This document shows positions 4,818-61,613 of a stretch of 64,000 bases of DNA, piece by piece. The translations under genes and the position numbers were made by a program. The stretch lies in sequence record LC667451.1. One strand, written 5' to 3'. Each line of letters starts with the position of its first letter. Within the stretch, counting starts at the first letter, position 1. The notes below the pieces were generated by a model. It was not told the DNA's origin and ran no database searches. It saw nothing but the letters and a program-made list of their open reading frames with translations.

Positions 4818-6449
4818 TTAACAAGAGCAAGGGTCACTGCCATCAGCAGGCACCAGACCCGGCGGATAGTTCGTCACCTGATTCGGCACATTTGCCTTCG
4901 CGTTGTTCGCTTGCACAAAGAGTGTCTGTACGGTGTAGCCTACAGGCGAGCCAGACGTAGCGGACTTCACGCCATTGATCGCATCGATCGCCTTGTTCAG
5001 ACACTCACGCGACACCATGGTGTCGTTGACAATGCACGGCAACAGATCACGATCCTTAAGCGTCGGGTCCAGGGCGTCGAGCAATTTGATCAGACACTGT
5101 GCACACTGTCGCAATCGGTCCAACGCCTCGATCGGCAAGAGCCGCAGGTTCTTCACCAGACTGATACGGACGTGATAAGTCTGACGCAGGTCCATGTCGA
5201 ACGTGGTCGTCACATTCAGATTCGCATCGACCTTGATCTTATCCGGCGTTTGCAGCTTATTACCACGATAGAGGCTCACGTGGAAGATCGACTGCATCGG
5301 CGTTGTCATGTACGGCCATTCCCGCTCCAGGCAACAGCGCATGTCCGGGTCCAGCAACAGATCGCCCCCGAGGTTATCCCCCAGGTTAAACAAGGCGCGC
5401 GGATTCGCCGGATCGATCTGGATCAGCAGCGACACCAGTCGGAGGGTATCTGGCACCACGCTACTGGGAATGAACTCGTCGTAGCTCGGCACCTGATAAC
5501 CCTGGCGGCGCTGCAGATAGTACATCGGACCACCAGTCTCGAAATACGCAAACATCCTGGCCGATAGCGCATACTTACGCAAGGACTGTTCGATCTGATA
5601 GGCGGGTTGATCGGGTGGCTCAGCGTGGTACTTGATCATCTGGTTGTGGATCACCAGCGGATAGAACATCGCACACGCATTGGGCTTATCGTACTTGAAC
5701 TTGTACGAGAAACTAATGGTCCAGGTCGAACCATCGTCTTCCTTGCTACCTTCTTCAGGCACCCCTTCCCAGTCAAACCAACCGAGCACACGAATCTGCG
5801 ACTCGGCAATCCCCCAGCGACCGTTGTTACCCGCCTGGTTCGTCAAGAATCGTGCACGACTTGACATGTGCTGTTTGAAGTACGTGTCGAAGTCCTGACC
5901 ATAGCCTGCCACGTTTTCACGCAGCCGGTGGATCTCACGCATGATCACGAAGAACTCTTCGGGAATCAGGTAGTGGTAGTTGATCTGGTGAATGAACTGT
6001 TCACGGTTCATCGCCGTGCGGTTCTTGACGTCATCACGCCAGCGAATCGCCTGTTGCTTACTGCGTGCCCGATACTTGAAGTTCATCGTCACATCGCACG
6101 AGCCATAGGCCGGTTTGATGATGGCGCCCAAATGGGGGTCATGCCAGATTGACGGGTTCTCGGGACGGAAGATCGCGGTCGACAAAATGCGCTCTTCCTG
6201 ATACTGTTCGGTGACTTCGAGCGTCACCTGAGACGTAAACGGTAATTTGGTGGCTTCCGGAGTGCTCGTCGTGATTGACGAGCCGTTCTGCTGTCCCTTT
6301 TCGATGTCACCGGGATAGAAGATACGAATGTCCTTGGGCAACCCCGTACGCTGCATGATGTTCCGCGCAATGTCAAAAACCACCGGTCGCGTCACATTCT
6401 CGTAGGTCTCATGCAGATCGACCAATACTTTTGGCATCGGGAGCCTCAC
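4818..6449 (-). CDS. Virion structural protein (gp98-like)
   Basis: 543-aa ORF; synteny. Confidence 0.65.
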   Translation of the reverse strand: MRLPMPKVLVDLHETYENVTRPVVFDIARNIMQRTGLPKDIRIFYPGDIEKGQQNGSSITTSTPEATKLPFTSQVTLEVTEQYQEERILSTAIFRPENPSIWHDPHLGAIIKPAYGSCDVTMNFKYRARSKQQAIRWRDDVKNRTAMNREQFIHQINYHYLIPEEFFVIMREIHRLRENVAGYGQDFDTYFKQHMSSRARFLTNQAGNNGRWGIAESQIRVLGWFDWEGVPEEGSKEDDGSTWTISFSYKFKYDKPNACAMFYPLVIHNQMIKYHAEPPDQPAYQIEQSLRKYALSARMFAYFETGGPMYYLQRRQGYQVPSYDEFIPSSVVPDTLRLVSLLIQIDPANPRALFNLGDNLGGDLLLDPDMRCCLEREWPYMTTPMQSIFHVSLYRGNKLQTPDKIKVDANLNVTTTFDMDLRQTYHVRISLVKNLRLLPIEALDRLRQCAQCLIKLLDALDPTLKDRDLLPCIVNDTMVSRECLNKAIDAINGVKSATSGSPVGYTVQTLFVQANNAKANVPNQVTNYPPGLVPADGSDPCSC

Positions 6450-6480
6450 TGAATTTTCATCATAGGATCGGCCTCAAGGG

Positions 6481-6508
6481 CATAGGAGGGAACCCGAAGG
6501 TTCCCTCC
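6481..6508. terminator. Intergenic hairpin with CATA flank
   Basis: GGAGGGAACC-CGAA-GGTTCCCTCC. Confidence 0.7.
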
Positions 6509-6515
6509 CGAGGCG

Positions 6516-7883
6516 TTATGCTGCCTGCTTGCCTTGCTGCATTTCCTGCATGATCTTCTGTTCTTCGCCCTTGTCCTTCACTTCGTAGAGACCCACGTAG
6601 TTCTGGACCAGCATCAGAAGCGCACGCACGACGCCGATCACCTTCGTGTAGAAAGCGACCGCCGGTTGCTGCACCCAACGCGCGTACGTCGGGTTGAAGT
6701 TCAGCATCATCTTGATCTCGGCGATGAGCGCCGGACTTGCTTCAGCTGCTTCCTTCGAGAGTGCCTTCAGCGCTTCTTCCGAGGAGACCTCGATCTCCTT
6801 GCCAGCCTGACGCAACTTCTTCATTGCGCCGCCCGACTTGTTGAATCGAGCCACGGTCTGAATCATGTCCGAGGCATCCTTCAGGAGCTTCTCGTACACG
6901 GCCGGACCGTTGTGCTTGAAGGTGATCTCGTCGTCCTTCGGATCGTCACCGGCTTCCACCGACAGACCCGTGTTACGCAGCCGCTCGAGCGCGAGCAGCG
7001 GTTCCGGAGCCGCGCCGTCGAAAGTGGCGAACTTGAAGTACGTGCAGCCGAGGATCTCATGGCTGGAGCGCACCTTGAAGTCGCCTTCATTCGCTGAGAA
7101 CGGCATCGGGAACGGCAGACCCGTGGCGTTGTTCGAGCTCTTGATGACGGACACGAGACGGTTCATGGTCTCGTCGGTGTTCTCACCCGTCCAGTTGTCG
7201 ATCGTATCGGCGATGTCCTTGCCGAGCTTCGAAACGCGCTCCGGATTGGCCACGTACACCATCTCGACGGCCTTGTTGAACTTCTCGAACTCCTGGGCGA
7301 ACTCCGCAGCACTACGCTGAATACGCAGACCATTGGACAGATACGACAGGCCCGTGGTCAGTTCCATCTGGGCAGTCTGGCCGTAGCGCAGCTCACCCGT
7401 CCGGTTCTTCAGCTGACGCAACATCAGTTGCAGACGTGCGTAGATCGAGGGCAGCACGACGTGAACTTTCAGGAAGTTCTCGATGTGATCCCAGATCTTC
7501 TTCATGAAGGCCTTGATGGTCGCCCACAGCCGCTGCGCCGAATCCGTCCAGCCTTCCGTAGCGATCTCCTGACCCACTGCCAAGGGCGGACCCTTAAGCA
7601 GGTTCTCCGGCGCCATGCCCGTACCAGCCACGGCCATCTGCGCGCAGTTGTCGATCAGGTCGAGCTCCATCGACGTCGGCTGCTCGATGTTATCGGCGAT
7701 GACCGCCAGGTCCTCCAGGGCTTGCTTCAGGTCGACCAGACGTTCGACTTCGGAGAGACGATCGTCACAGGCCTGAGCCTCTTCGTTCGCGTCCCCGACA
7801 ATGATCAATTCTTCTTCCAGCGACACACGCTTGATCGAGCGTGCGTCCTCCGACGGGGGCGTCGGAGCAAAATGTTTACGCAT
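6516..7883 (-). CDS. Internal head (inner body/ejection) protein, phiKZ gp93-97 paralog family
   Basis: Acidic propeptide (SLEEE, ALEDLA, AQMAVAGT) ending in IATE/GW, then WxxIKxFxxKIW helix; S/A/G-x-E sites match phiKZ head-protease specificity. Confidence 0.75.
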   Translation of the reverse strand: MRKHFAPTPPSEDARSIKRVSLEEELIIVGDANEEAQACDDRLSEVERLVDLKQALEDLAVIADNIEQPTSMELDLIDNCAQMAVAGTGMAPENLLKGPPLAVGQEIATEGWTDSAQRLWATIKAFMKKIWDHIENFLKVHVVLPSIYARLQLMLRQLKNRTGELRYGQTAQMELTTGLSYLSNGLRIQRSAAEFAQEFEKFNKAVEMVYVANPERVSKLGKDIADTIDNWTGENTDETMNRLVSVIKSSNNATGLPFPMPFSANEGDFKVRSSHEILGCTYFKFATFDGAAPEPLLALERLRNTGLSVEAGDDPKDDEITFKHNGPAVYEKLLKDASDMIQTVARFNKSGGAMKKLRQAGKEIEVSSEEALKALSKEAAEASPALIAEIKMMLNFNPTYARWVQQPAVAFYTKVIGVVRALLMLVQNYVGLYEVKDKGEEQKIMQEMQQGKQAA

Positions 7884-9281: not shown

Positions 9282-11570
9282 TTACACCGCAGCCGGAGCC
9301 TTGGCCGGAGCTTCACCACTCGCAGGCTTGGCGGCAGCCGGAGCTGCGCCGTACTGCTTGAGCGATGCGTCGACCCAGTTCAGTGCTGCATTGCCGGTAC
9401 GCAGAGCGTAGATGTTGAACTCCTTGAACGGCTCTTCCAGGGCCTTCTTCACGCCCAGGATAGCTTGCTTGGTGTTCTCCGGCGACGGACCGCTGGTGTC
9501 AGCGCTCTGGCCTTCTTGCGCAGCGAACTTCTTCGCCGTGGCAGCCAGTTCCTTGATCACGCCAGCCGCAGCACCAATACTGTTCTTGGCCGTCTTGATG
9601 ATAGCAGCCAGTTCAGCAACTTGCTTCGCGACCGTACCAGCTTGCGGCAGCGACAGAACCGGCAGCTTGCTCTGCACGTTGCCTGCACCTTGTGCTTCGT
9701 CCATACCTGCGGTCGATTCGCCCATGTTCGAATCGTTGCCGATCTTGAAGACGATTTCCTGATTGCCCGGCAACACGTCCGAAGCAAACACCTGGAAACC
9801 ATCTTCCGAGCCGCGCTGCTTCGCGATGCTCATGACCGCGTTGCCCCACGGCGAGGTGATCGTCATGCCGCCCAACGAGGCGCCATCTTGACCCTGACCC
9901 ATCTTGGCGGTGCTCGTCGCGAACGAAAGAACCTTCTCGTAGCCAGCGTACAGTGCCTTGGCCGTCTGACCCAGCTTGGCCAAACCGTTCACGTCAACCT
10001 TGCCACCGATTGCCAGTGCTTCGGCAACTTGTGCATTGTCGACTTCGCGGGCCGTCGGTTGACCTTGCGTCGACTGAGCTTGTTGAGCCAGCTTGTTCGC
10101 ACGGTTTTCCAGCTGCACAGCAGCGTTGGTCAGCTTCTCGCCGAGTTGCAGGAGGAATTGACCCGCGGCAACCAGTGCCTTCCAGATCTTGTCCCACACG
10201 GTCTTCAGCGCCTGGCCGATCGCTTCCATCGACAGTTGCGTCGAGGACATCTGCTTCGACACACCGCCGAACGATTCGAGCGACAGGACGTGCGGACGTT
10301 CCGCGACGGGGATGTCCAGACGGTTCAGATAGCCTTCGAATGCGTGACGGAAGATCGCGGCACCGCTGCGATTCAGGCCGCCCGTTTCCTGAGCGATCTT
10401 CAGCGTTTCGCGCAGATGTTCCAGCGCTTCGACGACTTCACGACCGGCTTCGACTTGTTCGCCGACTTCGTCGACGCTCTTTTCAGCGTCCGCGACTTCG
10501 AGCAGTTCACCTTCCAGACCGCCAGCAGCTTCGTCGAGTTGACCAGCTTCGGCTTCGACTTCCGTCGGCAGGCCTGCACCAGCTTCTTCGCCACCTGCGG
10601 GTTCCATCGGCTCAGCAGCGCGCATGCCGCGCCCTTCAGCACGAGCCACCAGCGCACGTGCGTTTTCGAGTTCGACCGGATCGATGTCGTCCACGCCACC
10701 AGCGTCGGGAGTAGCAGCCGGTTCGCCAGCGTCGACACCCGGCACTTCCGTACCAGCATCCGCGCCCAGATCGGCACCCGCTTCGCCCGTCGGCACTTCC
10801 GTTTCGCCGCCGCTCATCGCAGCTTCGCCACCTTGGCCGGGGATCGCACCTTCAGCGCCTTCAGCACCAGCAGCCATTTCAGCGGGGTCGCCTGCGACTT
10901 CCGGGGGCATCGTGCCTGCTTCGGCAGCACCAGCTTCGGCACCTGCGTCGATCGGGGGAACTTCAGCAGCCGGGGGTTCACCCGCACCTGCTTCCGCGCC
11001 GTCGACCGGCGGCACAGCGGCTTCGCCGCCTTCACCTGCTTCTGCTGCGGCAGCCGCTTCACCTTCCGGTGCGACGTCCGGTGCAGCCGGAGCTTCTTCT
11101 TGCTTGCGGATTTCTGCTTCCGCTTCGTCCGAAGACATGCCTGCGTCTTCGAGCGCGACCTTGATACGTGCACGTTGGATCGGCGAGAACTTCGCCTTCT
11201 TGCCGTGGCTTTCCAGCGCGCCAGCCGTGCCAGCGATCTTTGGCGGCTTGCCTTCGTCGCCCTTGGCGATGCTCTTCGTCGGGTCTTCACCGTTGGACAG
11301 CTGAGCCGGGACTTCGCCGTCTTGCTTCACAGCCGACGAACCGATGTCCTTCTTGTCAGCGGGTTCCTGGTCGCCCTTGTCCTTGCCTGCAACCGACAGC
11401 GTGGGATCTTCACCGTTGCTGATGTTGGCAGGCACTTCACCGTCTTTGGTCGGCTTCGGGATGCTCTTGTCGCCAGCGCCGATGGCAGCTGCGGCTTCTT
11501 TCGACAGACCGTCGGTGTTTTCCAGCGCGACCTTGGAACGGGCGCCGAAACCATTGCGAATGCTACGCAT
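9282..11570 (-). CDS. Internal head protein with long acidic low-complexity propeptide
   Basis: Several ALE sites, A/E/G/P-rich N-terminal half, LSME/AI site followed by the family helix (VWDKIWKAL). Confidence 0.7.
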   Translation of the reverse strand: MRSIRNGFGARSKVALENTDGLSKEAAAAIGAGDKSIPKPTKDGEVPANISNGEDPTLSVAGKDKGDQEPADKKDIGSSAVKQDGEVPAQLSNGEDPTKSIAKGDEGKPPKIAGTAGALESHGKKAKFSPIQRARIKVALEDAGMSSDEAEAEIRKQEEAPAAPDVAPEGEAAAAAEAGEGGEAAVPPVDGAEAGAGEPPAAEVPPIDAGAEAGAAEAGTMPPEVAGDPAEMAAGAEGAEGAIPGQGGEAAMSGGETEVPTGEAGADLGADAGTEVPGVDAGEPAATPDAGGVDDIDPVELENARALVARAEGRGMRAAEPMEPAGGEEAGAGLPTEVEAEAGQLDEAAGGLEGELLEVADAEKSVDEVGEQVEAGREVVEALEHLRETLKIAQETGGLNRSGAAIFRHAFEGYLNRLDIPVAERPHVLSLESFGGVSKQMSSTQLSMEAIGQALKTVWDKIWKALVAAGQFLLQLGEKLTNAAVQLENRANKLAQQAQSTQGQPTAREVDNAQVAEALAIGGKVDVNGLAKLGQTAKALYAGYEKVLSFATSTAKMGQGQDGASLGGMTITSPWGNAVMSIAKQRGSEDGFQVFASDVLPGNQEIVFKIGNDSNMGESTAGMDEAQGAGNVQSKLPVLSLPQAGTVAKQVAELAAIIKTAKNSIGAAAGVIKELAATAKKFAAQEGQSADTSGPSPENTKQAILGVKKALEEPFKEFNIYALRTGNAALNWVDASLKQYGAAPAAAKPASGEAPAKAPAAV

Positions 11571-56873: not shown

Positions 56874-58799
56874 TTACCAGCGGCTGCCGAAGTTCGAACG
56901 CCAGCCGCCGCCTTGCGAGGCGCCGCCACCGAAGCCCGAGGAGAACAGGCCGGTAGCGCCCGGAGCCATGAGCAGGCCGTTGGCGAACTGCGCCGTCGCA
57001 CGCTCTTGACCAGCGATGTCGCCGAACGGGTACTGGGCACGCAGTTGCAGGCCGGTATCCAGGCAGCCCTTCGCGAGAGCTTCCATGAAGTCACCTGCCA
57101 GCGTTGCGCGGCGCGAGAAGCCCGTGAACGTTGCGTCGCCCACCAGCGCCTGGATGATAGCCTTGCGGCGTGCCAGACGTTGTGCTGCCGGGATCTGCAG
57201 ATTCACGAACGAATCGCTCCAGTCCTTGATAACCGACGGGTCCTTCTCGCCGATCATGTTCGCGACTGCCAGGTAGTCGATGTTGCGGATGTCGCACTTG
57301 CGACCGTTGCTGTCGACGTACCAGCCGTTGTGGATACGCGTCTGGTTGTCGAATGCGACGCGGCCCGAACCCTGGTAGTTCTTGCCGAAGTTGCCGTTCG
57401 TCAGATGCTGCGCGGCTTCGATGATGAACGCATTGGCGCGGCTGTTGCCTTCCGCGGCTGCTGCGAACACCGAGTTCGACCACGTCGACGGACCGCATTC
57501 CGGCACGTCGATGGACATGAGCAGACCCGGACGCACGAATGCTTGCAGGATCTTGTTCAGCGTGCCTTGCTGCGCGAAGCTGTCCGACTTCGTGTCGATA
57601 CGCGCGCCGATGCCGTTCGGGTTGCCTTCCGGATTCGCTTCGATACCGATTGCACCGATGTCGTGCATGTCGATGCCTTGCGAGTACGGACGCGGTGCGA
57701 AGCCACGAGCCCACGCATTGCCGTCACGCAGCATCATGGCCTGCACGAGCGCGAACAGCTGCGCCGGAACGGTCATGAGCTCGACGCATTCGAGGTGCGT
57801 CATGATGAAGTGCGTCACGTACAGCGGGCTGAACTGCTGTTGTTGCTGGCCCCAGTTGCCGTACGGGTTGCCTTGCGGGTTCACCGGGTCCCAGACCAGG
57901 TCCAGGAAGCCGCCGACCACCGACACCTTCGTTGCGCGCGCGTCCGCGTTGGCGCCCGTACCTTGCTGAGCCGCCGTAGCGATCAGTTCGATGAGGACGT
58001 CGGTACGGATCGGTTCGCCGACCGGGTCGACCAACTGGTCGTGGTTGAACTGCACGCGTGCCGTCAGGTTCGAGTCCTTCGCTGCGCCAGCCAGGTTCAG
58101 ATCGTGGAAGTCCGAGCGACCGCGGTCGAGTTCGTGCGCGTCGGCGAACAGCGAGTTCGCAGCCAGCTGGTACACGAGCGGTTCGTCCGCCATGTTGAAG
58201 TCACGCGGCACGACCGTTGCTTCTGCGTCGACCAGGCGCGCGCCAGGGAAGGTGCGCGACACGGCGTCGGCTGCGACTTCACGGAACTTGTCGTCCCACA
58301 CTTCGCAGTCGAGACGCATGATTTCGACGTTCTGGCCGTTGATCTGCTCGTACTTCGGCGGGAACGGCTCGCCCGAACCGGCGACGATCAGGGTGTGGTA
58401 CGCCACGCCCAGGTCCTGGCTATTGCGGTCGAACATGGCGACGATCAGCGCCGAGCGTGCGATTGCCGGGTTGTTGTTCATGTCGAGCGGGATGAGCTTG
58501 ATCTCGAAGGACGGGTTCGCGCCCTTGTAGATTTCGGCCAGCGCCTTCTCGAGCTTGACCAGCACTTCCGAGGCCGGGTTACGGCCCATGGGAGCGTTGG
58601 CCAGGCGGCCCATGCTGCGGAAGCTGAAGCCTGCCGGAGCGTCTTGTTGCGGAGTGCTCATGTTACCTCGTCCTTGTTGGGATTGCTGCTTTTCGTTACC
58701 GCGCGATGCGGAGAAACCGGCGCCCGTCGACTGCGTGCTGCCTTGGCCTGCGTTCGACGATTGGCCGTTCTGGTTGTTGTCGGGCGTTTCGATTGCCAT
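56874..58799 (-). CDS. chmA: Chimallin, major phage-nucleus shell protein
   Basis: 641 aa directly upstream of nvRNAP beta'; AYHTLIVA, YLAVAN, G-rich C-terminus; strong codon bias; own early promoter and terminator. Confidence 0.85.
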   Translation of the reverse strand: MAIETPDNNQNGQSSNAGQGSTQSTGAGFSASRGNEKQQSQQGRGNMSTPQQDAPAGFSFRSMGRLANAPMGRNPASEVLVKLEKALAEIYKGANPSFEIKLIPLDMNNNPAIARSALIVAMFDRNSQDLGVAYHTLIVAGSGEPFPPKYEQINGQNVEIMRLDCEVWDDKFREVAADAVSRTFPGARLVDAEATVVPRDFNMADEPLVYQLAANSLFADAHELDRGRSDFHDLNLAGAAKDSNLTARVQFNHDQLVDPVGEPIRTDVLIELIATAAQQGTGANADARATKVSVVGGFLDLVWDPVNPQGNPYGNWGQQQQQFSPLYVTHFIMTHLECVELMTVPAQLFALVQAMMLRDGNAWARGFAPRPYSQGIDMHDIGAIGIEANPEGNPNGIGARIDTKSDSFAQQGTLNKILQAFVRPGLLMSIDVPECGPSTWSNSVFAAAAEGNSRANAFIIEAAQHLTNGNFGKNYQGSGRVAFDNQTRIHNGWYVDSNGRKCDIRNIDYLAVANMIGEKDPSVIKDWSDSFVNLQIPAAQRLARRKAIIQALVGDATFTGFSRRATLAGDFMEALAKGCLDTGLQLRAQYPFGDIAGQERATAQFANGLLMAPGATGLFSSGFGGGASQGGGWRSNFGSRW

Positions 58800-58916: not shown

Positions 58917-59531
58917 CTAGCTTACGTAGCTTCCTTTCCAGCCCTTATGATGCTTCCGGCGTCCTGCAAAGACATCGTACATTCCGGTTGCTGAGAGCCC
59001 GTGCTTCTGACAGAACTCAAATAGGTTAGTCCCCTGATGCTCAGTCCCGTCTGGAGCAACCATGACAAACGTTTTAGCAATAGCCTGCGCTTGTCGTGCA
59101 TGTCCTGGGTCTGTCAACTTGGTTTTGCCTACTTTGGCTTCCGAACTTTTACGATAACGATCGGAGGTGTCTTTTGTCTGGCCAATCATCTCGTCACCGC
59201 GCCTGCGGTATCCGTTGATGTGTCGACCATTCTCAAAACGTTCCTTATGATTCTGCTCGACCGTAATAAAACGACAGCTTTCTTCGGTATAGTTTCCCAC
59301 GTCTCCGACACGACCCAAGACATGTTGACCTTTCCGACGCCCAATACTAGACGGTTCGGTAAGACCAGCATTAACAACTTTGTCAAGGTATTGTGAAAAC
59401 GTTAATACCGAATCGAGATCACGTGCGCGAGCAGCCTGAAGATGAAGTGAGTACTTCGTAAACCATTCTTCGGCTTGTTCGGCAGGAAATCCCTTCTCTA
59501 CAACTACAGCTATCTTTTCTTGCAGATGCAC
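58917..59531 (-). mobile_element. Free-standing HNH-like homing endonuclease gene with C-terminal NUMOD1-like HTH
   Basis: RVGDVGNYTEESCRFITVEQN beta-beta-alpha-metal-like motif; FEFCQKHGLSATGMYDVFAGRRKHHKGW tail; visibly AT-richer than flanks. Confidence 0.7.
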
Positions 59532-59745: not shown

Positions 59746-60276
59746 TTAGTGCAGCTGGCGACGTTGCTTGCGCGGCAGGCGAGCTTGTTCGCGAATGCGG
59801 CGTTCTTCCAGCTGCTCCGGCGTGTAGGCCAGGTTCGTGGTGAAGCGATCGTACGGAACGACCAGATTCACGAACACGGTACCTTCGTCATTGCGTGTGA
59901 CGCGCAGATTGCCGGTGGTGATGCCGTGATACCACTGATGCTCGTTCAGGCGCGCGATCGAGAGGTCGTTGTCGAATTCCTTCTTCTCGGCAATGATCAA
60001 CTCGTAACGCACCAGCGCCCAGTCGACTTGACGGAACGTCGTCGGATACGGACGTTGTGACAGGAAACGCATGAAGTACTGTTGCTTCTGGAAGTTCAGA
60101 TACGCTTCCTGTTGCGCAGCACGCTGCATCGCTTCCGTGACTTGTTCCGGCGTTTGCTCCGGATTCGCAGCCAGCCCTTCAGCCGTGACCTGTGCGAGTT
60201 CTTCTTCGCTCATCACGTCGTCCAGCGTCGGCACCTTCGTGCGTACGGTTACTTCTTCTTGCAGTTGTTCTTCCAT
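59746..60276 (-). CDS. Hypothetical protein with basic C-terminus
   Basis: Likely ATG 60276 (TAATG overlap); ends RLPRKQRRQLH. Confidence 0.65.
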   Translation of the reverse strand: MEEQLQEEVTVRTKVPTLDDVMSEEELAQVTAEGLAANPEQTPEQVTEAMQRAAQQEAYLNFQKQQYFMRFLSQRPYPTTFRQVDWALVRYELIIAEKKEFDNDLSIARLNEHQWYHGITTGNLRVTRNDEGTVFVNLVVPYDRFTTNLAYTPEQLEERRIREQARLPRKQRRQLH

Positions 60277-60761
60277 TAAGTCCACCGATCACGTTTTCTG
60301 TTCTTGGGTAATGCCGGACGACGCGAGCTCTTTCCAGGGTTGTTCACCTTAAAAACGGGCATAGCGTATTCGACTTCTGCCAAGCTGGGGAGCTTAGCGT
60401 CACTTCTCATGGGATGAGTTAGGCCAGTTATTTTTTCCTGGATTTCCCGTTCACTCATCCCACGATTCTGGAGTTCGCCGCGCAATTCCTCGGGCGAAGC
60501 AATCACGATAAGCGGAAGTTGGGCAGCCCGAATCTTCTCGATCACGTGAGGTGCATGCAAGGAGTGTCCCACGTACAGAATTGGCAGATCCCGCCAAGCG
60601 CCCTTGTGCTGCGCAGTCAACTCCATCACCGGCGTGCCATCAGGCAGCTTTAGTGTAATGGATTCGCCAGTTTGATCAATCGGTTCAGTGAGGGGCTTAG
60701 TCATTTCCCGCAAGGAATCGATAATCTCCTCGGTACTCCCTCTGAGTTCGCCTATTCCCAC
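60276..60761 (-). CDS. Hypothetical protein with basic C-terminus
   Basis: Ends RRPALPKNRKRDRWT; start uncertain. Confidence 0.6.
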   Translation of the reverse strand: MGIGELRGSTEEIIDSLREMTKPLTEPIDQTGESITLKLPDGTPVMELTAQHKGAWRDLPILYVGHSLHAPHVIEKIRAAQLPLIVIASPEELRGELQNRGMSEREIQEKITGLTHPMRSDAKLPSLAEVEYAMPVFKVNNPGKSSRRPALPKNRKRDRWT

Positions 60762-61075
60762 CAGTTCCTCCGCTTGTATTGGGAAGCCGTTTGTGCACCG
60801 TGCTTCTTCTTTTTCTTGGCACGACGCTCTTCACGATTACGGGGATCGATCATCGGCCCGTGATTCATGTTGGTGTACGTCCTGGTACCGGTATCCTCGC
60901 CGATGTTCCCGTACAGGGTGACGGTACTGGTATCGCTGCCCGCATGCGCAACCGCTGCTTGCAGTGCTGCAATTTGCATCAGGGTACGCATAGGGCTACG
61001 TCGACCACTACCTGGGGAATAGTGACCGATGGTGCCGACATTCACGTGCGGCTTAGTGCGTTCGAATTTGGGCAT
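60752..61075 (-). CDS. Small protein (107 aa) with an EF-Tu N-terminal peptide and a basic C-terminus
   Basis: ATG 61075 in TGATG overlap; MPKFERTKPHVNVGTIGH...; no GTPase P-loop. Confidence 0.8.
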   Translation of the reverse strand: MPKFERTKPHVNVGTIGHYSPGSGRRSPMRTLMQIAALQAAVAHAGSDTSTVTLYGNIGEDTGTRTYTNMNHGPMIDPRNREERRAKKKKKHGAQTASQYKRRNWWE

Positions 61076-61341
61076 CACCAAGGTCCGATCAGGAAGAGGC
61101 AGGCGAGCGGGATAGCCAACACCAGGTAAATGAGACAGACCCAGGCTTCCTGTTTGCGCTTCTTCGGATTCGTGTGGCGGGTCTCGAAGCGATTATCCAC
61201 TTCGTAGTGACCAAAGCTAACGCGCCGTGTTTCGGTAATCAGCGTCGTTTCACGGAAACCTTCGAAATACATCATGAAGTAAAACGCGCTGCCGAAATAG
61301 AGGAGAAAGGCGAGTGTTCTCGCCAAACCGAGCCAAGGCAT
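61075..61341 (-). CDS. Small two-helix membrane protein (88 aa)
   Basis: ATG 61341 in TGATG overlap; hydrophobic N- and C-terminal segments. Confidence 0.65.
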   Translation of the reverse strand: MPWLGLARTLAFLLYFGSAFYFMMYFEGFRETTLITETRRVSFGHYEVDNRFETRHTNPKKRKQEAWVCLIYLVLAIPLACLFLIGPW

Positions 61342-61613
61342 CAGGATTCCTTCGGTGTGGGGTTGGCACAAGACTTACAGGTCATGCGGCGCTTGTAGCC
61401 CAGGAAGTGATGACGGCAATGCAGGCAGATGCATTCGTACATGCCGTTCTCGTGCGGAAAGTCTTCCGGCCAGTTACGGGCAAACGAGCCCGGATGCTGG
61501 CGATTGAATGCCGCCACAATGGCGCTATCCAGTTTGCTACGGTCTGCCTGTAGGCCTGCTACGGTAGCAGAGGCTTTAGCCGCCTCGGGGCTCGGTCCGA
61601 TCTCTTGACTCAT
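61341..61613 (-). CDS. Small Zn-finger protein
   Basis: NWPEDF.HENG.Y.CIC.HC...F.G.KRR..C.SC. Confidence 0.65.
   Translation of the reverse strand: MSQEIGPSPEAAKASATVAGLQADRSKLDSAIVAAFNRQHPGSFARNWPEDFPHENGMYECICLHCRHHFLGYKRRMTCKSCANPTPKES

Follow-up and report, generated by a model that had tools for sequence, protein, structure and literature searches.

The FLC9 locus and the N-terminus of gp386

The DNA analysed here, a window of 64,000 nucleotides, is the final 64 kb of LC667451.1 (321,833 bp), the record of Burkholderia phage FLC9, whose host is Burkholderia glumae (megablast, 100% identity). Judging from its chimallin gene, which matches phrog_4795, FLC9 is a nucleus-forming jumbo phage. 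Our subject is FLC9_gp386 (hereafter gp386; Table 1), an open reading frame (ORF) on the minus strand that is deposited as BDD79905.1 under the annotation 'hypothetical protein' and that opens with a copy of the N-terminus of bacterial elongation factor Tu (EF-Tu).

The upstream gene ends in a TGA that overlaps the ATG of gp386 (TGATG), and residues 3-18 of gp386 are identical at every position to residues 4-19 of Escherichia coli EF-Tu (phmmer against the PDB, best E 7e-6). The identity ends at His18, the point at which EF-Tu enters its P-loop, and gp386 continues without a P-loop motif. The initial annotation of this ORF, made from the letters alone, had described the coupled start, the 16-residue identity, its end at the P-loop and the basic tail, and each detail that we checked proved correct. 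A profile built from the gp386 family (see below) retrieves EF-Tu chains only from the PDB (E 1.7e-8), with matches spanning no more than positions 1-27 to 1-45. Pfam GTP_EFTU (PF00009) has no match in gp386: the N-terminal tail and strand beta-1 stand at the start of the protein as they do in that family, whereas the P-loop after beta-1, the further G motifs, domains 2 and 3 and a match at the curated threshold are all missing, and the protein has 107 amino acids (aa) against about 395 in EF-Tu. In its placement the peptide does resemble genuine EF-Tu, since in the family as in real EF-Tu genes (loci L017-L035 and L089) it lies 2-4 residues after the initiator Met. Compared with the elf18 epitope of EF-Tu, the 16 residues are identical and those ahead of them differ (Met-Pro in FLC9), acetylation being a property that cannot be read from sequence.

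At the protein level the identity extends to E. coli EF-Tu and to tuf genes from at least 120 species other than the host B. glumae, among them metagenome-assembled genomes of Burkholderiaceae and Burkholderiales. This sample was obtained with a degenerate pattern back-translated from the 16 residues of the window with GC-rich third positions, which matched at least 120 tuf genes; none of the matches listed belongs to Burkholderia sensu stricto, and the nearest tuf among them differs from the 48 nucleotides of gp386 by 4 synonymous changes. A search of 185,579 species genomes found no exact copy of the 48-mer.

Selection on the peptide within the gp386 family

Homologues of gp386 came from a large protein search (13 proteins of 81-108 aa, several on metagenomic contigs of 310-327 kb), from IMG/VR, which added 8 loci, and from a representative search, which added the divergent member P0018. 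The resulting family comprises 19 distinct proteins from one clade of FLC9-like nucleus-forming jumbo phages. We define it by an EF-Tu peptide 2-4 residues after the Met, a C-terminal block that closes with Trp-Trp-Glu and membership of a small-gene array upstream of chimallin, and gp386 has all three.

In each of the 19 proteins the peptide follows the initiator Met after 2 or 4 residues. Eight of its columns (K3, F4, R6, K8, P9, H10, G14 and T15) are invariant, five (E5, T7, V13, I16 and H18) are kept in 18 of 19 members, N12 in 17, and V11 and G17 in 14. Constraint is highest in the tail ahead of strand beta-1. Over the same stretch most third codon positions differ across the family. By pooled Nei-Gojobori counts the proportion of synonymous sites that differ (pS) is 0.70 in the peptide and that of nonsynonymous sites (pN) 0.06, giving a ratio of nonsynonymous to synonymous rates (dN/dS) of about 0.03, compared with 0.21 in the variable middle of the protein and 0.12 in its C-terminal block. 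Whole-protein identity to FLC9 gp386 is 47-66%, against 73-92% for chimallin in the same phages, while the first 18 residues are nearly unchanged.

These data show that the peptide is kept by purifying selection on the protein, which within gp386 acts most strongly there. Because near-identical tuf DNA is absent and the homologues retain the peptide, we regard it as an old, selected feature rather than a recent acquisition. The initial annotation had proposed a peptide held at the free N-terminus by protein-level selection, and had named near-identity to tuf DNA with no peptide-keeping homologues as the finding that would speak against it; the first half of that proposal is borne out by the 19 homologues with their scrambled synonymous sites, and neither part of the contrary finding was obtained.

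The middle and the C-terminal tail

Beyond the peptide, residues 19-61 are variable, and most of this part is deleted in the lineage of P0014. The C-terminal block is conserved again, its invariant columns including G73, P74, M75, D77, R79, R81, E83, R84, R85, K89, K91, W105, W106 and E107, and residues 61-107 carry a net charge of +8 out of +11 for the whole protein. From this composition and conservation the tail is probably nucleic-acid-binding, with RNA as its probable ligand. Its short Arg/Lys-rich helix with nearby aromatic residues presumably resembles antiterminator peptides of the lambda N type, a likeness for which no sequence or profile match was obtained.

AlphaFold2, run on a 14-sequence alignment, returned mostly coil, including the peptide region, with a mean predicted local distance difference test (pLDDT) score of 57 and a predicted template modelling (pTM) score of 0.19. 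The Ala-rich helix at residues 28-43 takes the place that helix alpha-1 has after the P-loop of EF-Tu, with no significant profile match to support homology between the two.

How far the resemblance to EF-Tu reaches was addressed by profile comparison. The family profile aligns with an EF-Tu profile at 98.5% probability (hhalign), with the signal coming from the first ~27 positions; once the first 18 residues are removed, the best match is a stretch of 7-8 residues opposite EF-Tu 110-117, which is not significant (P 0.16-0.23). The later motifs of the family do fall opposite the switch-II helix and the 110-117 motif of EF-Tu with their order kept, a non-significant hint, and a phmmer alignment with trypsin-nicked EF-Tu extends over gp386 residues 3-70. 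The initial annotation had called the remainder of gp386 unrelated to EF-Tu; statistically this stands, but it passes over these weak, ordered resemblances to later motifs of the G domain. 

Residues 38-80 (60835-60964, minus strand) also resemble a unit repeated 7-11 times in giant surface proteins (phmmer E down to 3e-13), namely P0015 (DUF7507/CHU_C) and P0017 (LapA/Calx-beta). We rejected homology here: these are Ig-like or LapA-type repeats, and the similarity is probably compositional.

Genomic neighbourhood

In every relative with enough flanking DNA, gp386 lies in the same array of small genes on one strand. The order is a divergent DNA polymerase, a 377-aa gene on the opposite strand and then the array, in which the gp386 homologue stands two genes before chimallin. 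Its usual upstream neighbours are the homologues of gp387, a membrane-protein gene that is missing in some relatives, and of gp388, whose product has four Cys in two pairs with conserved His and Tyr residues; of all the neighbours of gp386 this one is kept most consistently among the relatives.

One locus joins two of these neighbours. On contig L163 (Logan SRR25024142), positions 6001-6531 hold a single ORF of 176 aa (P0016), syntenic with 60752-61613 of FLC9, in which a zinc-ribbon part 58% identical to gp388 is followed by a segment 48% identical to the C-terminal two-thirds of gp386. In the manner of a Rosetta-stone fusion, this ORF ties gp388 to gp386 in function, and it also shows the gp386 tail to be a unit in its own right.

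A different arrangement is seen on contig L005, where a 154-aa GNAT acetyltransferase gene (9570-10034; PF00583, E 1.6e-16) lies immediately upstream of and overlaps the gp386 homologue, in place of the membrane-protein and zinc-ribbon genes. As a conserved partner of gp386 it was rejected, tblastn having found it in no other family locus and not in the window. On the other side of gp386, between gp384 and chimallin, FLC9 carries an HNH endonuclease gene, gp383 (58917-59531, minus strand; phrog_2081, E 5e-12), and three relatives (L002, L003 and L006) have no gene at that position; gp383 is probably a free-standing homing endonuclease insertion. Scans for sigma-70 promoters and terminators around the gp386 locus gave no signal above shuffle expectation, and no tRNA gene was found in the 64-kb window.

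Table 1. Features of the gp386 locus in FLC9 and comparable proteins of other phages
Feature	Position	Strand	Length	Basis or remark
gp386, coding sequence of a small basic protein with an EF-Tu-derived N-terminus	60752..61075	-	107 aa + stop	Annotation; isoelectric point (pI) 10.6, net charge +11; dN/dS <1 over full length
gp386 codons 3-18, EF-Tu N-terminal tail with strand beta-1, under the strongest constraint in the gene	61022..61069	-		Identity to EF-Tu; pS and pN
gp386 residues 28-43, Ala-rich helix, sole predicted structured element of the variable middle	60947..60994	-		AlphaFold2, low confidence; variable columns
gp386 residues 62-107, conserved C-terminal block with Arg/Lys-rich helix (81-92) and terminal Trp-Trp-Glu	60755..60892	-		Alignment, AlphaFold2, charge
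FLC9_gp387, small membrane protein with two hydrophobic segments, upstream of gp386 and translationally coupled to it	61075..61341	-		In most relatives, not all
FLC9_gp388, small Cys-rich zinc-ribbon-like protein, conserved neighbour	61341..61613	-		phrog_8931/phrog_10481, function unknown
FLC9_gp385, downstream gene overlapping the gp386 stop	60276..60761	-		Gene calls; no assignment in family searches
Chimallin, shell protein of the phage nucleus, landmark of the conserved gene array	56874..58799	-	641 aa	phrog_4795, E 1e-99; PF25677 on syntenic genes of relatives
Vibrio phages 207E48.1 (p0029), 1.244.A (NVP1244A_125)/1.255.O and 150E35-1 (P0089)			126-239 aa	Ackermannviridae annotated for 207E48.1 and 1.244.A
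Vibrio phages henriette 12B8 (VPDG_00052) and 2.058.O/3.058.O			59 aa	henriette gene in early nucleotide-metabolism region
Haemophilus phage Aaphi23 ORF27 = phrog_27465			59 aa	nin region; host listed as Actinobacillus actinomycetemcomitans (Aggregatibacter, oral)
IMG/VR contigs L028, L030, L033, L034, L036 and L037			67-82 aa	
EF-Tu N-terminus fused to YbcO nuclease	L031:2989-3525; also L032, L038		179 aa	PF07102, E 3e-44

Small proteins with an EF-Tu start in other phages

The initial annotation had suggested looking for phage ORFs in which the EF-Tu N-terminus is joined to non-GTPase sequence. With tblastn and with IMG/VR scans for small ORFs that begin in this way, we found them in several unrelated lineages, at least four in addition to that of FLC9: Vibrio Ackermannviridae, Vibrio phage henriette, the Aaphi23/phrog_27465 group and a set of metagenomic viral contigs (Table 1). 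Within each lineage the EF-Tu part is conserved better than any other segment, and its codons differ synonymously from member to member. Some of the P-loops are intact and others degenerate to varying degrees; the C-termini are basic and in many cases aromatic. Several of these proteins are substituted at His10, as the sampled real EF-Tu genes never are, which sets them, like gp386, apart from recent captures. The start codon overlaps the stop of the upstream gene in FLC9, henriette, Aaphi23 and 207E48.1 alike, and only coding sequence, with no tuf leader, has been retained.

The Vibrio phage proteins share with gp386 a best-conserved EF-Tu peptide, a variable middle and a basic C-terminal tail, but they belong to other phage families, differ widely in length (59-239 aa) and in the degeneration of their P-loop, and resemble gp386 in the EF-Tu part only. 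The longest, P0089 of 150E35-1 (L166:1-717, 239 aa), has the EF-Tu N-terminus and P-loop, a switch-I-like motif some 110 residues further on (hhalign P 0.009) and, at its end, the basic tail that it has in common with p0029 of 207E48.1; the protein may represent a G-domain fragment caught part-way through shrinkage. On such grounds it is plausible, if unproven for gp386, that the class as a whole derives from longer N-terminal pieces of the G domain.

The phrog_27465 group (Aaphi23 ORF27 and the proteins of L031 and L036) is like gp386 in its EF-Tu start followed by a basic, Trp-containing stretch, in its upstream coupling and in its place among accessory genes. It differs in keeping the P-loop and helix alpha-1 (Pfam GTP_EFTU over 1-31 to 1-51), in belonging to temperate lambdoid phages and in including YbcO fusions, of which that on L031 has a P-loop with an insertion, a Trp/Arg-rich linker and then a putative YbcO nuclease domain. 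Whereas Aaphi23 ORF27 matches all 59 positions of the phrog_27465 profile (1-59, E 6e-46), gp386 aligns with residues 3-22 only, against positions 5-24 (E 4.7e-5), and the tails cannot be aligned.

Matches in phage records of Moraxella (Mcat7), Salmonella, Acinetobacter, Listeria and Staphylococcus were rejected as analogues, for they cover only the conserved EF-Tu N-terminus; those in the Salmonella records are annotated as translation elongation factor Tu genes, and that in Mcat7 translates as full-length host tuf within a prophage record. Many predicted IMG/VR provirus contigs (L017, L019-L026, L029 and L035) likewise end in or include the host tuf gene, and on L021 an E. coli-like tuf reading frame closes after 176 aa. 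Temperate phages thus often reside beside tuf and could acquire the start of the gene by imprecise excision, an argument that concerns origin only.

A possible mimic of the EF-Tu N-terminus

Taken together, we think that gp386 is probably a working molecular mimic of the EF-Tu N-terminus. Mimicry by a peptide is suggested by the combination of protein-level selection, a fixed free N-terminus and recurrence across phage lineages, and further support comes from the loss of the P-loop, the conserved Arg/Lys/Trp tail, synteny, translational coupling and the same architecture in unrelated lineages. The first ~20 residues of gp386 would derive from the 5'-terminal part of a bacterial tuf gene, and the free peptide would serve as a short-linear-motif mimic of the EF-Tu tail and first strand. 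In the GTP form of EF-Tu this tail reportedly docks on domain 2 through Arg7 and is needed for binding of aminoacyl-tRNA; gp386 would thus present in trans a segment that in EF-Tu itself docks on its own domain 2 and supports aminoacyl-tRNA binding. The basic tail may tether the protein to RNA (tRNA or rRNA) or to another acidic surface, the most likely site of action would be EF-Tu, the ternary complex, the ribosome or a reader of the EF-Tu N-terminus, and the timing would be that of the phase in which the small-gene array beside chimallin is expressed. To the more specific proposal that a mimic module joined to a probable RNA-binding tail targets the translation apparatus, or a factor by which the EF-Tu N-terminus is read, we would give somewhat less than an even chance.

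Several observations weigh against a mimic. No partner is known or predicted, and EF-Tu is so abundant that a competitor in trans would have to be strongly expressed or bind with high affinity. The first glycine of the P-loop has become Ala in 5 of the 19 family members, and in the P0014 lineage constraint is relaxed over the strand portion of the peptide. gp386 is modelled as largely disordered with two helices, at a confidence too low for any fold to be read from it. At the L163 locus, where chimallin is 81% identical, no EF-Tu-like peptide is found in any frame, which indicates that the peptide is dispensable or replaceable in some settings; since the peptide persists in L003, a phage that is further removed (chimallin 73%), the L163 state is probably derived. 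Finally, the same N-terminal module is joined elsewhere to a YbcO nuclease, which would fit a generic portable tag equally well.

Alternative explanations

Two alternatives deserve serious attention, each of them possible but in our judgement unlikely. The first is that gp386 acts as a decoy or pseudosubstrate, its EF-Tu-like N-terminus occupying a defence protein, a toxin or a modifying enzyme and so protecting EF-Tu or averting an abortive response. Phage defence converges repeatedly on EF-Tu: Lit and the caspase-like protease of type IV Thoeris cut its switch-I loop (at R45/R59 or G59-I60), Avs7, which binds domains II-III, incorporates EF-Tu into its complex, and the interbacterial toxin TreTu modifies the neighbouring P-loop residue D21, for which it needs folded, GTP-bound EF-Tu. 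The tail itself is a target of modification, EftM methylating Lys5 (PMC6401129). This standing of EF-Tu in conflict gives a rationale for a phage look-alike, and a decoy would also accord with strong selection on the peptide and with the setting of gp386 among small accessory genes, as for its analogues in the nin region of Aaphi23 and the early nucleotide-metabolism region of henriette. The parallel with Lit (with the T4 Gol peptide), type IV Thoeris, Avs7 and TreTu extends to the central place of EF-Tu in the outcome of infection; it does not extend to mechanism, as these are host or bacterial proteins that act on other parts of EF-Tu (switch I, D21 and domains II-III) and none of them is reported to recognise residues 1-18. 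In the literature searched, no defence system, toxin or enzyme is reported to recognise that segment. A decoy would moreover have to compete stoichiometrically with a protein that makes up 6-10% of the proteome, and fusion of the same module to a nuclease would not be expected of it.

The second, which we consider no more probable, is that the module is a portable N-terminal tag that involves no mimicry and favours early elongation, N-terminal processing, stability or solubility, leaving the basic tail as the functional part. Its presence on different C-terminal parts across phages, both basic tails and the YbcO nuclease, is what a tag would predict, as is the pairing of the tail with a different N-terminal part in L163; EF-Tu is also among the most highly synthesised proteins, and the peptide region is predicted as coil. 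A tag of this kind is nonetheless difficult to reconcile with invariant columns and the very low dN/dS of the peptide while the rest of the protein changes freely, with conservation of identical residues across at least five phage lineages that differ in hosts and codon usage, and with the loss of the tuf untranslated leader.

Less probable still, we believe, is that gp386 is a shrunken pseudo-GTPase, a remnant of the first ~120 residues of the G domain that has kept a surface for EF-Ts or for the region of the sarcin-ricin loop. The phmmer alignment over residues 3-70, the motif order opposite switch II and 110-117, the P-loop and switch-I-like motif of P0089 and the P-loop and alpha-1 of other lineages would all suit such a history, but the EF-Tu match of gp386 loses significance without its first 18 residues, the profile match in the PDB stays within its first 45 positions and Pfam GTP_EFTU does not detect it.

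That the peptide goes back to chance, to the remnant of an integration site or to recent neutral capture of tuf DNA we count as refuted: proviruses beside tuf offer a plausible origin but do not account for persistence in a conserved syntenic family with saturated synonymous sites and almost no replacements in the peptide, chance is opposed by E-values against EF-Tu of 1e-5 to 1e-8, and a remnant of a phage attachment site (attP) in tuf, rejected as a candidate, is contradicted by the absence of the exact 48-mer from the genomes searched and by the lack of an integrase, in what is a nucleus-forming jumbo phage, among the gene calls surrounding gp386 in FLC9 and at the loci of its relatives. 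Modulation of plant immunity, which the initial annotation had raised because the peptide covers the greater part of the EF-Tu epitope that EFR senses and which the host, a rice pathogen, might seem to favour, is very improbable, as the analogues occur in phages of marine Vibrio and oral Aggregatibacter, gp386 has no export or secretion signal and a lysing host releases far more genuine EF-Tu.

Implications

Mimicry of the EF-Tu N-terminus may extend well beyond FLC9. Phages of many kinds (jumbo, Ackermannviridae, lambdoid temperate and gut phages) could repeatedly have captured the start of tuf as a portable mimic borne on RNA-binding tails and nucleases, in which case these proteins would form a new class of host-takeover or counter-defence factors; we advance this tentatively. 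The initial annotation knew of no described function for such a protein, and the literature searched likewise holds no description of phage-encoded EF-Tu N-terminal fragments or of what they do. The names under which the 59-240-aa phage ORFs appear in databases ('elongation factor Tu GTP binding domain protein', 'P-loop containing NTP hydrolase' or P-loop NTPase) were assigned automatically and are misleading.

EF-Tu is the most abundant translation factor, and the function of its universally conserved N-terminal tail is poorly defined. Mimicry by captured fragments of host genes is a known viral strategy; to our knowledge, however, a copy of the EF-Tu N-terminus at the level of a peptide, conserved in a family of jumbo phages and paralleled in unrelated phages, is undescribed. 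The constraint on the peptide and its parallels in unrelated phages point to a cellular reader of the EF-Tu tail, for which the gp386 family would constitute a natural probe. If the translation machinery is that reader, gp386 would represent a novel kind of host takeover; if instead a defence protein or a toxin reads the tail, the family would embody a new principle of counter-defence, in which an essential host protein is mimicked at the level of a peptide.

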